The translations under genes were made by a program, and so were the position numbers. From assembly GCA_025603075.1 (NCBI GenBank), contig MU626282.1, positions 62,001-126,000 on the forward strand: a DNA stretch of 64,000 nt. Direction: 5' to 3'. The first letter of the stretch is position 1, and each line of letters starts with the position of its first letter. The notes under the pieces are model-generated. The model saw only the letters and a program-made list of their open reading frames with translations, did no database searches and was not told the origin of the DNA. This DNA is from Neoconidiobolus thromboides FSU 785 (Eukaryota > Fungi > Entomophthoromycota). Positions 29,833 through 33,850 of the stretch are shown piece by piece.

Positions 29833-31026
29833 ATGAGTTTCAACAACATAAACGAAAAAATCAACATGATCATAGATACTGATCCTGGCGTAGATGATAT
29901 CTTAGCTTTATTATTAGCTTTTAGAGCTCAGCATGTTGATGTTAAATCCATCTGTCTAACTCATGGTAACACCAACTTAAACAACGTAATGCGAAATTTT
30001 TGCTCTCTATTTCATACTTTGACTTTACAACATAACTACAACTTGGCTAAAGATCAAAACGCCAAAGATTTATTTTCAAAGCCAAATTTACCGCGTGTAG
30101 CTATAGGTTCAACTGCCCCTATGAAAGGAGATTGTTTTGCGGCTGAAGATGTACATGGTAGTGATGGATTTGGTAACTTAACAAATACACATCCCCATTT
30201 TATTGATAATGAATTCAAATCCAAGTTGTCTAAAGAAGTAGCATTTGAAAATAAAGTAAACGATACCGGAGCAAGATTTGAAGTTAGTGAATACAATGCA
30301 GTAGATGAGATCCTTTTTCAATTAAAAAACAATCCACCGTTCACTATTACTATTGTTACTTTAGGGCCTTTAACCAATCTTGCTAAAGCGATACAAAAGG
30401 ATGCTTATACTGTAGGTTTGGCAAAACATATTTACATCATGGGCGGTGCTTGTAAAGTACCTGGAAATGTAACCACTGAAGCAGAATTTAATTTCTTTGC
30501 TGATGGGTATGCGGCAAAGGTAGTACTTGACGCTACCAGAAATTTCGATGAAGCAGCTCATTTAGAAAGGATAAAAAATAGCTCAATTGATACCAAATTT
30601 GATACTATATTACCACTAGCTATCTCTTTAGTGCCATTAGATATTACAATGAGTACTTATTTGCTTCGTAAAACAATTGAAAATAAAGTAGGACTGAAAC
30701 AGGATATACCGTTAGCTAGCTTTTTCAAGAATTTGTTAAATGTTGCGATTGAATGGTCTTTAGAATTTGAGAAAGTTGATGGGATTGCGTTACACGATCC
30801 CTTGTGTATGGGCATTGCTATAGGATTAGTAAAACCAAAAACAGAGTATGAGACTATAGATGTACACTATGAGCATGAGCATTTACTCGGTAAATGTGTG
30901 ATTAAAACTACCTTAACTGAAAGCCCAGATGTAAAGAAAGATTGTTCTTGTGTTAGAGTTTGTTATTCTTTTGATGAAGCTGATGGATTTCAACATTCCT
31001 TAATGAATTATATTTTTGAAAATTAA
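29833..31026 (+). CDS. Inosine/uridine-preferring nucleoside hydrolase (Urh1-like)
   Basis: IIDTDPGVDD, VHGSDGFG, LGPLTNLA, MGG..GNVT.EAEFNF..D, LDIT, ALHDP; intronless 397 aa. Confidence 0.93.
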   Translation: MSFNNINEKINMIIDTDPGVDDILALLLAFRAQHVDVKSICLTHGNTNLNNVMRNFCSLFHTLTLQHNYNLAKDQNAKDLFSKPNLPRVAIGSTAPMKGDCFAAEDVHGSDGFGNLTNTHPHFIDNEFKSKLSKEVAFENKVNDTGARFEVSEYNAVDEILFQLKNNPPFTITIVTLGPLTNLAKAIQKDAYTVGLAKHIYIMGGACKVPGNVTTEAEFNFFADGYAAKVVLDATRNFDEAAHLERIKNSSIDTKFDTILPLAISLVPLDITMSTYLLRKTIENKVGLKQDIPLASFFKNLLNVAIEWSLEFEKVDGIALHDPLCMGIAIGLVKPKTEYETIDVHYEHEHLLGKCVIKTTLTESPDVKKDCSCVRVCYSFDEADGFQHSLMNYIFEN

Positions 31027-32206
31027 ATATTGACACTCTTAATATATCTCACTATAGTTAATTAAATTTTGATGTCTTTATTTCGATTATTTTATCTTTA
31101 TTTATAAACCAGCCTCAAGGCATTGACAATTATATAATAGTTAAAGAATGAGCTTTCAGTAATATTTAATTTTAATTCTTGAAAATTATCTTCTCATGTG
31201 AATGAATTCCTTATAAACAAAACTTTACTTAACTTATTGCTGATTTTAAAATGAATCGAATTTTCATCTCCAGAGTTCCAAGAAATTACATAAGTTCTCC
31301 TCCAATCATATATATAACAATAAAAAATATCAAACTAATGTCATATTCCAATATAATTAATTTTCTGCAAAAAATAATCATATTAAAAATTGAAACAGAG
31401 AATTTTTTATAAATTAAACCACTTTTAGCGGTAAATTTTGAAATGTTCCAAAAACCGAAAGAGTACATCATATTGGCTTGATTCGGATAGTTTATCTCCC
31501 CAAAAAATAATATTTAACAAATATAATTTGGAGTAAGATATGTTTAATAATATGTTTTATAACATGCGTTAGATAGTATATTTTTTAAAGTTATCTTTTA
31601 TACATTTTAGTTAAAATATTTAACTTTAAAATTTTTAACAAGAAGCTAACGCTATCAATAAATTAACTACAATTGTTATTTTTGTAACTTAAAGAAATTA
31701 AAGTTTAGGCCAATTACAGTCTTTTAATTTTATACTTGGTAATGATGAAAAAATCCTATCTTTATTCCCAATATTTATTAATAGCTGATAACAATTTCGT
31801 AAAGTAGCTAAGAATTGTCACCACATGTAGCCAAAAAAATAAAATTAATTAATAAGGCCGATTTTATTTAATGATTATCCAAAAATTGACCCAAAAATTC
31901 CGTGAACTGAAAATGATGGAGCCAATCATGATAATTGAAATTTCCCAAAATCAAAGTTTCCTAAACTAAAAGTGGCAATTTTTCACTATTTCCATTACCG
32001 TTGCTTTTAAAAAGTTTTTGTATTTTTCTTTTATTTATTTCTTTACTCTAAGCTTTTTTATACTATTTATTGATTAAAGTTTGAGTATCATTATCTCATA
32101 GTGAATAGTGTTTAGTTATAAAACATCCTTATTCAATACTAATTTAATCCCACCCTCTTTCACCCTTTCTATTTAATAAAACTGACATCTACCCGATAAC
32201 TTCTCA

Positions 32207-33229
32207 ATGAATATGTTTGCTGAAAAAGAACTTAGAGAATGGAATAAGACAGAGTATTTTAAACAAAACCATAAACAATATGTTAAATCAAAAACACAAG
32301 TCAACCCGATAAACAACCCGAATGAACTACCACCATTGTATAAATATCCATTAGATATACTTAAATCTCATCTGGCAAGAAATGAAAAGATGCTAAACGA
32401 TAGGTAAGATAAAGTAGTAAAAACGTGGTCGATATGAACTAATTATTTGAATAGAGAGTTTGTTGAAAAGCTTCCAGATAAAGGAAAAAAGTTATACGAA
32501 TCAAACAAATTAATTAAAGAAGCAATTAATATAAAGTTAAAATTCAGTGCCGTTCCACCACCATCAGTGCCCAATAAAGTGACCAAAAGCTATAACCATA
32601 CTCAAACACGATCTTTAAGTGATGCAGAAATAAAAGCATTGCGAAGTCGGATGCTTAAACAAGGCAATCGATCTCAAGATGCAAGTATGGATTCTATTAA
32701 TGAACAGATCAAAAAGTTGTCAATTGGTAACAAGTCGTATACCAGTAGCTCAGAAACCAGTAGTTCGTCTAGAGAAAGTTTATCCTCAATATCAAGCTTG
32801 GCCAATAGCTCTGAAAATATAGCAAAGCTTCGAAATACAATAAATAGAACAAATCTAGAAGTACAAGACATCAGCTATAGCAGTAGAAAATATCCTGCCT
32901 CCTCTAGGAGTCATACGGCTAGTAGAGAAGACATTTATAAACAACAATCTGAGCAGGAAAGAAGGCGTCAGGTAAACTTGATTGTAGCTTTGGTTTAATA
33001 GATATTAATTTGTTTTTTAGCATGAAGTTATGTTACATAAAATGGCCAACCAGCCAAAGGGAACTAAACCGAAACATGTACAGCAATCACAAAGGTAAGA
33101 TATCATATATTATGTAATAAGATACAAGTACTAAAATGTTATTATAGACGCCCATTGTTTACAGGGTTTGATTGTGACGATGATGACTCCGATGACTTTG
33201 ATGGCTTTAGTGAGGATGAATACTGTTAG
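32207..33229 (+). CDS. Protein with Gdown1/GRINL1A (POLR2M)-like LPDKG motif, 4 exons
   Basis: Exons 32207-32403, 32455-32971, 33021-33094, 33148-33229. [39 protein letters not shown] parallels human Gdown1 [39 protein letters not shown] (recalled); acidic C-terminus. Confidence 0.7.
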
Positions 33230-33850
33230 AGTTTAACATCATTGACTTGTTTTAGTGGTATTAGGTTTTAAAATTGAATAATAACTAACTTATTTTGGCA
33301 ATTATCTCTTTGTTTGGGTGCTATGTTTCATTTAAATAATCTTGCTTATCTTGGACCCTTTTTTTACATGCATTGAAATAAAGTTTACATCATTTGTATA
33401 GTTTTAATGCGATCTTTCTCTTATCTCTGTTTAAACTTTAATCTCAATTTATTAATAAACAAGTTATTTCTTCTTCGAGTAGATATCCCCTACTTTTATT
33501 CTTAGTAAATTCAACTTTATGCTAGCTAATTAATTAATAATACTTTCGCGCTAACCAAGATTTCATTAATTTAAATTAATTAAATTAAATTTTGATAAAA
33601 ACATCAATTTTTTATTAAATGTCTTATCATCATCTATCAAATGATGTATGTGTCTAAAACTAAAAAAAAGAAAGGTTTAAAAAATAAAAAGATTTAAAGG
33701 TATATATGGCATAAATGGAAGGTATTTTTAGTTTAGAATAGACTAGTAATTTTAAAGCTTAATTTTTATAGATAGAAGCAAAGCTTTATTCTTTATTCTC
33801 AAAATGACGCTTTTTTTGTTAAAAGCAATACTAGATTGATGAACAATATT

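Follow-up and report, generated by a model that had tools for sequence, protein, structure and literature searches.

A probable divergent homolog of the RNA polymerase II subunit Gdown1 in the fungus Neoconidiobolus thromboides

The DNA analyzed here, referred to as the window, is a stretch of 64,000 nucleotides from the insect-associated fungus Neoconidiobolus thromboides FSU 785 (Entomophthoromycota; assembly GCA_025603075.1, contig MU626282.1, positions 62,001 to 126,000 of the forward strand), and the gene in question occupies positions 32207-33229 on the plus strand of this window. The gene probably encodes a divergent homolog of Gdown1 (also named POLR2M or GRINL1A), the substoichiometric 13th subunit of animal RNA polymerase II (Pol II). 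Gdown1 makes animal Pol II Mediator-dependent, is a competitor of TFIIF and TTF2, and accompanies newly assembled Pol II; to our knowledge, yeast, the main Pol II model, is without it. A preliminary description of the locus had proposed a fungal Gdown1 on the basis of three successive blocks of similarity to the human protein: an N-terminal block around KLPDKGKK, a central block, and a C-terminal block followed by an acidic tail.

Structure and transcription of the gene

The reading of the DNA and of RNA contigs resolves the locus into four exons encoding a product of 289 residues (Table 1). RNA contigs from four public runs, which belong to two studies, were placed on positions 31900-33500 (1601 letters); they skip exactly the three introns listed in Table 1, all of which are bounded by GT..AG, and a single contig of 1432 letters crosses all four exons. 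The gene is transcribed and spliced according to the four-exon model, and both this spliced model and the positions of all the peptides quoted in the preliminary description are correct. The ATG at 32207 is the first possible start in frame, because an in-frame TGA is present at 32183-32185. The untranslated leader given in Table 1 is a minimum, as other RNA contigs extend further upstream of 32151 without a splice.

The public gene model K502DRAFT_323366 (P0001; window 32688-33229; 146 residues) joins exons 2, 3 and 4 in the identical manner. Its start at an internal Met (MDSINEQ...) cuts off all of exon 1 as well as 77 codons at the head of exon 2, both of which are covered by RNA. Since the internal-Met start leaves out the Gdown1-like motif, this motif has been hidden from searches of protein databases. 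The searches reported below used either single exons or K502DRAFT_323366 (exons 2-4 joined) as queries, and family-profile scores are therefore given exon by exon.

Exon 2 starts with a helix-turn-helix built around the pentapeptide LPDKG, which is followed by a Ser-rich, mostly disordered middle containing three predicted helices. In the AlphaFold2 model of this exon, helices are found at exon residues 8-29, 56-91, 106-139 and 157-171.

Table 1. Features of the Gdown1-like gene and its transcript, in positions of the window
Feature	Position	Strand	Remarks
5' untranslated region, minimum extent	32151..32206	+	RNA contig of run X1 begins at 32151
Exon 1	32207..32403	+	65 codons plus the first 2 nucleotides (AG) of an Arg codon; RNA joint 32403 to 32455
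Last 21 residues of exon 1 (residues 45-65), resembling helix alpha1 of the Gdown1 RPB10-binding region			Anchored and free alignment to the tail of bird exon 1
Gdown1-like RPB10-binding module	32339..32527	+	Protein residues 45-90, interrupted by intron 1
Intron 1	32404..32454	+	51 nucleotides, GT..AG, phase 2; skipped in all four RNA runs
Exon 2	32455..32971	+	Last nucleotide of the Arg codon plus 172 codons
LPDKG pentapeptide	32471..32485	+	Protein residues 72-76
SINEQIKKLSI	32693..32725	+	Central match of the preliminary description; similarity not significant
Start of C-terminal helix (SREDIYKQQSEQERRRQ)	32921..32971	+	Ends at phase-0 intron 2; helix 157-171, predicted local distance difference test (pLDDT) score ~90
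Intron 2	32972..33020	+	49 nucleotides, GT..AG, phase 0; RNA contigs
Exon 3	33021..33094	+	24 codons plus 2 nucleotides; same joining in the public annotation
Intron 3	33095..33147	+	53 nucleotides, GT..AG, phase 2; no counterpart in the bird Gdown1 gene
Exon 4	33148..33229	+	RR pair, then acidic tail with aromatic residues; stop TAG at 33227-33229
3' untranslated region up to the poly(A) addition site	33230..33400	+	24 A's behind 33400 in run X1

The N-terminal module and intron 1

The Gdown1 family is represented in Pfam by the model GCOM2 (PF15328; gathering cut-off 27 bits), and GCOM2 is the only Pfam family that matches the start of exon 2. The match has an E-value of 0.0018 (19 bits) when the whole exon is used and of 1.4e-4 (22.6 bits) for its first 50 residues, and covers profile positions 14-37. 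It is divided between exons because intron 1 cuts it, profile positions 1-13 falling in exon 1; the first residue of exon 2 of the bird Gdown1 gene described below sits at profile position 13. Pfam reported no GCOM2 match for exon 1, for its last 20 and last 30 residues, for exons 3 and 4, or for K502DRAFT_323366. In a six-frame search of the 24.6-Mb genome, the best GCOM2 match was this same locus (E 0.002, 22.4 bits). The second-best (C256, 17.4 bits), a histone-fold protein whose lead is acidic and Ser-rich, was discarded as a chance match driven by composition; this protein, encoded at L002 1327-1644 (-), contains LPLARVKKIIREDKEF.

Direct comparisons agree with the profile match. The head of exon 2 aligns with the corresponding bird Gdown1 exon with a BLASTP E-value of 8e-5 over 23 residues, and with a profile of 20 birds with an hhalign E-value of 4.8e-5. 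In a language-model feature search of the ESM Atlas, a GRINL1A cluster ranked first (0.87, 185/256 features), which is taken as a lead only. A sequence search of the Protein Data Bank (PDB) with exon 2 retrieved human GRINL1A by way of the motif, at an E-value no better than 9.8; the best-ranked match of that search, a cytochrome c555 trimer, was rejected as a repeat artefact on an unrelated stretch of the exon.

The motif itself, KLPDKGKK, occupies residues 71-78 of the protein, and the segment containing LPDKG aligns with residues 40-62 of the human and 33-56 of the bird protein. The helix that follows LPDKG was modelled confidently by AlphaFold2 without an alignment (pLDDT ~90). The hexapeptide KLPDKG is found genome-wide in just one coding sequence, that of this gene; a further copy of KLPDKG (C32) is not part of any open frame. 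It should be noted that the bare LPDKG is uninformative, because it is also present in three unrelated open reading frames (ORFs) of the same genome that, by the look of their sequences, resemble a GH47 mannosidase, an acyl-CoA synthetase and a methyltransferase.

A Gdown1 gene suitable for comparison was obtained by scanning metagenome DNA for KLPDKGKK. Of the 82 loci found, 81 match by chance, most of them in frames that are short or bacterial; the remaining locus, L057 (in its extended form L099), carries a Gdown1 gene, the large exon of which scores 127 bits against GCOM2. The proteins nearest to it are bird GRINL1A proteins (83-86% identity), so it is bird DNA, not human. The locus corresponds to the Joint Genome Institute (JGI) metagenome contig Ga0065711_1039465 (17.8 kb), which holds a complete four-exon bird GRINL1A gene and is presumably host or environmental bird DNA.

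An ungapped alignment of 46 columns runs across the junction of exons 1 and 2 and pairs fungal residues 45-90 with bird residues 11-56 and human residues 17-62. According to a 2026 cryo-electron microscopy study of cytoplasmic Pol II (PMC13443923), residues 19-73 of human Gdown1 constitute its RPB10-binding region, in which R30, R33 and L44 are interface residues. In the ungapped register the fungal counterparts of these three are R58, K61 and L72, so that the contact positions are kept as R, K and L; the order of helix, LPDKG turn and helix is retained as well.

The part of this alignment that precedes the junction was assessed separately. When anchored at the intron, the last 14 residues of fungal exon 1 and the bird LREMLRRQERLLAD reach a BLOSUM62 score of 29. 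When 3689 windows of real peptides from the same genome region were scored, none attained this value, and against composition-preserving shuffles it corresponds to p 7.5e-5. A free hhalign of exon 1 with the bird profile, not significant alone (E 0.18), returned as its best alignment the same register, ending on the last residue of both exons. As a matter of arithmetic only, the anchored scores and the shared Arg sum to 29 + 5 + 59 BLOSUM62 units over 39 ungapped columns. The values for exon 2 and for the exon 1 tail place the first block of the preliminary description (L..L.R.E..L....F..KLPDKGKK......K.AI) above chance.

The gene structure coincides as well. In the fungus, intron 1 falls between the second and third bases of an Arg codon (AG/A), six residues ahead of the L of LPDKG, and the bird intron between ...LLAD and KFIA.LPDKGKK likewise splits an Arg codon after its second base (CG/G). 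The position of the intron and its phase, 2, are identical in the fungal gene and the bird Gdown1 gene, the one animal gene compared. The score of the motif region, the score of the flank, and the position and phase of the intron are largely independent lines of evidence. Taken together, comparison of sequences and gene structure shows residues 45-90 to be related by descent to the RPB10-binding segment of animal Gdown1, because the alignment is ungapped across the junction, the contact residues are kept, and the same phase-2 intron interrupts the same codon.

The presumed partner was also inspected. A complex prediction for N. thromboides Rpb10 and the first 50 residues of exon 2, run without alignments, helix alpha1 or Rpb3, gave a score of 0.00, which speaks neither for nor against binding. 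N. thromboides Rpb10 (P0122; L003 1375-1732 (-) = C92) is encoded by three exons and has a C-terminal extension of 19 residues. Its first helix (VWEHYKSRMAND) departs from the near-universal pattern KWE.YL.LLQ, as does the Entomophthora sequence; this helix belongs to the surface bound by human Gdown1, and co-variation with the partner is conceivable.

The central and C-terminal parts

The central block of the preliminary description paired SINEQIKKLSI with the human FIDRLQRITI. The peptide is present, but its similarity to the human block amounts to 0.5 bits and is not significant, and objective alignments pair it with a different bird segment, ...NPVIKKSKF. The human block is known as nuclear export signal 1 (NES1; L191, F192, I193 and I199; PMC9728996). 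SINEQIKKLSI fits the spacing of nuclear export signals, I-x3-I-x2-L-x-I, so that both proteins have a hydrophobic pattern of this kind in their middle, which is a fit to a pattern and not evidence of homology.

The third block, consisting of SREDIYKQQSEQ...HKMA and the acidic tail, is likewise present in the protein, but does not rise above chance. The Smith-Waterman score of the C-terminal half against the bird C-terminus is 37, a value attained by 23-57% of shuffles, and hhalign gave an E-value of 0.32 with K502DRAFT_323366. A feature search with K502DRAFT_323366 produced no usable match, and all of its structural neighbours had a template modelling (TM) score < 0.4. For the external-binding region of Gdown1 (human residues 224-255, with the helix HY.EVLE.RAKNP), no significant match was found in exon 2 or K502DRAFT_323366 by BLASTP, Smith-Waterman or hhalign.

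A second intron deserves mention here. Fungal intron 2 lies in phase 0, 17 residues past the S of SRED, and intron 3 of the bird gene, its last, lies in phase 0, 17 residues past the S of SIEES. The 17 residues anchored at these introns score 12, for which p is 0.018 with real peptides and 0.084 with shuffles as the background, and a gapped alignment of equal quality sets the two introns 2 codons apart. The sharing of a phase-0 intron at this C-terminal offset may hint at relatedness and is suggestive only.

In its overall layout, the fungal protein parallels Gdown1: both are small and mostly disordered, and the docking module is followed by a disordered, Ser-rich middle that contains helices, then by a C-terminal helix, basic residues, and a tail that is acidic and aromatic. 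The fungal protein differs in being shorter (289 versus 368-385 residues) and in having an extra N-terminal lead of 44 residues.

Some observations concern the surroundings and the transcripts of the gene. Upstream of it lies an intronless ORF of 397 residues (29833-31026, plus strand), which begins with a DTDPGVDD motif and resembles inosine-uridine nucleoside hydrolases. Upstream of 31900, the RNA contigs of the Gdown1-like gene continue toward this ORF, and read-through or overlapping transcripts are possible. In the 5' leader, the contigs of one study carry C>T changes at 32165 in three runs and at 32150 in one run, and two of its runs have an additional ATT behind 32146, while those of the other study are identical to the assembly between 32146 and 32165; strain variation is likely. 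Four runs of another organism (X6-X9) contain about 18% of the sampled words of the locus, and this organism may be a close relative with the same gene.

Relationship to Gdown1 and its meaning

We favour the reading that the locus encodes a divergent, largely disordered homolog of Gdown1, to which we assign a probability of about 0.65. As far as sequence goes, the homology is firmly established only for the RPB10-binding module; the proposal of the preliminary description holds for this N-terminal region and fails for the central and C-terminal matches, which do not exceed chance. The similarity goes beyond LPDKG, comprising 46 ungapped columns, the contact residues and the intron, but the profile scores are sub-threshold. 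Several observations weigh against homology with Gdown1. No exon attains the 27-bit gathering score of Pfam, whether scored exon by exon or in six frames, the hhalign probability for the head of exon 2 is just 68%, and the residues directly past the motif are not significantly similar when taken alone (p ~0.1). A comparison of the bird Gdown1 protein with the whole fungal genome did not recover the locus; only the family profile does. With exon 2 as the query, the sole match of a word-index search of 5.8 billion proteins was the truncated annotated protein of the same gene, and an exhaustive phmmer search of 1.84 billion representatives returned only the self-match; the protein looks like an orphan at the level of single sequences, and all the evidence for conservation within fungi comes from one species. 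The protrusion-binding region of Gdown1 (human residues 290-344) showed no significant similarity to the fungal protein by Smith-Waterman, hhalign or feature search, although it may be present and have diverged beyond recognition. Within this region, the human pair L303/L304, which is critical for the inhibition of transcription (PMC13443923), corresponds to T-A in the fungus under the alignment of the preliminary description. In addition, TTF2 has a conserved LPDKG of its own, which presumably competes with Gdown1 for one and the same Pol II site (PMC4007455), and the module is therefore not unique to Gdown1.

These last points bear on the view that only the docking module is shared, and that the remainder is an otherwise unrelated disordered protein, perhaps a different Pol II-associated factor, for example one that descended from an older module-bearing gene or arose by exon shuffling. 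We consider this unlikely, though far from negligible, given that significant similarity is confined to 46 residues and that no relationship is detectable for the middle or the C-terminal part. On the other hand, the Pfam match is to the family model of Gdown1, the flanks match helix alpha1 of Gdown1 and its contact arginines, and the second intron, in phase 0, lies at an equivalent C-terminal offset. The size and layout also resemble those of Gdown1 and not those of an SNF2 ATPase: TTF2 (lodestar), an animal Pol II termination factor of the SNF2 family, shares the LPDKG pentapeptide but, compared by description only, has more than 1000 residues with a GRF zinc finger and an SNF2 ATPase, and Pfam found no GRF or SNF2 domain in any exon of the fungal gene. 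A TTF2-like gene containing LPDKG was not encountered in this genome; a search by way of GRF zinc fingers yielded two loci, of which neither is near an SNF2 domain in the 3 kb read nor contains LPDKG, a result that is not conclusive. The two GRF loci are an AlkB-like dioxygenase ORF ending in a GRF finger (L101 1099-1686 (+) = C199) and an Asn-rich ORF (L100).

It is far less probable that the resemblance arose by chance, with a lysine-rich amphipathic helix in a fast-evolving orphan happening to contain KLPDKGKK. It is true that the scores are sub-threshold, that LPDKG occurs in three enzymes of the same genome and KLPDKGKK about 80 times by chance in metagenome DNA, and that the finding was drawn from a scan of very many genes. 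However, chance resemblance would need three independent coincidences, the joint probability of which is small: the score of the motif region has a probability of ~7e-8 per protein-family pair, that of the exon 1 tail ~1e-4, and an intron at the same base and in the same phase ~0.003-0.01, given 3 introns in 1149 coding bases. The product of the three stays small after correction for all Pfam families and millions of proteins. Contamination of the assembly with animal DNA, or the recent transfer of an animal gene, has nothing in its favour but the animal-type motif and is effectively refuted: the window has 22-31% G+C throughout, the introns of 49-53 nucleotides are fungal in style, the neighbouring genes are of ordinary fungal types, runs of both RNA studies contain the transcript, and identity to animal Gdown1 is low outside the motif.

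If the protein is a Gdown1 homolog, as we favour, its module would dock on the Rpb10/Rpb3 face of Pol II, as in the human cryo-electron microscopy structure, and the downstream helices and the acidic tail might make further, lineage-specific contacts. By analogy with the human structures, the protein could accompany Pol II, or an assembly intermediate of Rpb2, Rpb3, Rpb10, Rpb11 and Rpb12, and limit the access of other factors. The blocking of TFIIF and the dependence on Mediator cannot be assigned here, because the human segments responsible are not recognisable in the fungal protein. In human cells, Gdown1 accompanies freshly assembled cytoplasmic Pol II, along with RPAP2 and GPN1/3, and a possible functional analogy may be drawn with the yeast factors for Pol II biogenesis and import, Iwr1 (SLC7A6OS), Rtr1 (RPAP2) and Npa3 (GPN1). 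This would be an analogy only, as these families have no sequence relationship to the fungal protein, were not matched in the Pfam scans, and bind other surfaces of Pol II.

The preliminary description was right that Gdown1 is held to be metazoan-specific: two structural papers, one of December 2025 and one of August 2026, still describe it in these terms. No description of a fungal homolog emerged from a full-text literature search combining Gdown1, POLR2M, GRINL1A, GCOM2 or PF15328 with fungal terms. The gene would be a Gdown1-type member outside the accepted range of the family, in which only the N-terminal module carries the features of membership. We give even odds to the wider conclusion that Gdown1 is not an animal invention but already existed in the ancestor shared by animals and fungi, as a Pol II-bound factor anchored on Rpb10/Rpb3, that at least one early-diverging lineage of fungi (Entomophthoromycotina) has kept it, and that it has been lost, or has diverged beyond recognition, in yeasts and other Dikarya.

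The case also holds a practical lesson, as an annotation that starts at an internal Met omits the motif, and searches of protein databases could not have found the gene. If the homology is true, the origin of at least the Rpb10-docking module moves back to the opisthokont ancestor, and the absence of Gdown1 from yeast would be recast as a loss. A short natural variant that keeps the docking module without recognisable TFIIF-blocking parts would help to separate these two functions, and would provide a tractable minimal version in which to ask whether the ancestral role was that of an escort in Pol II assembly or of a brake on transcription.

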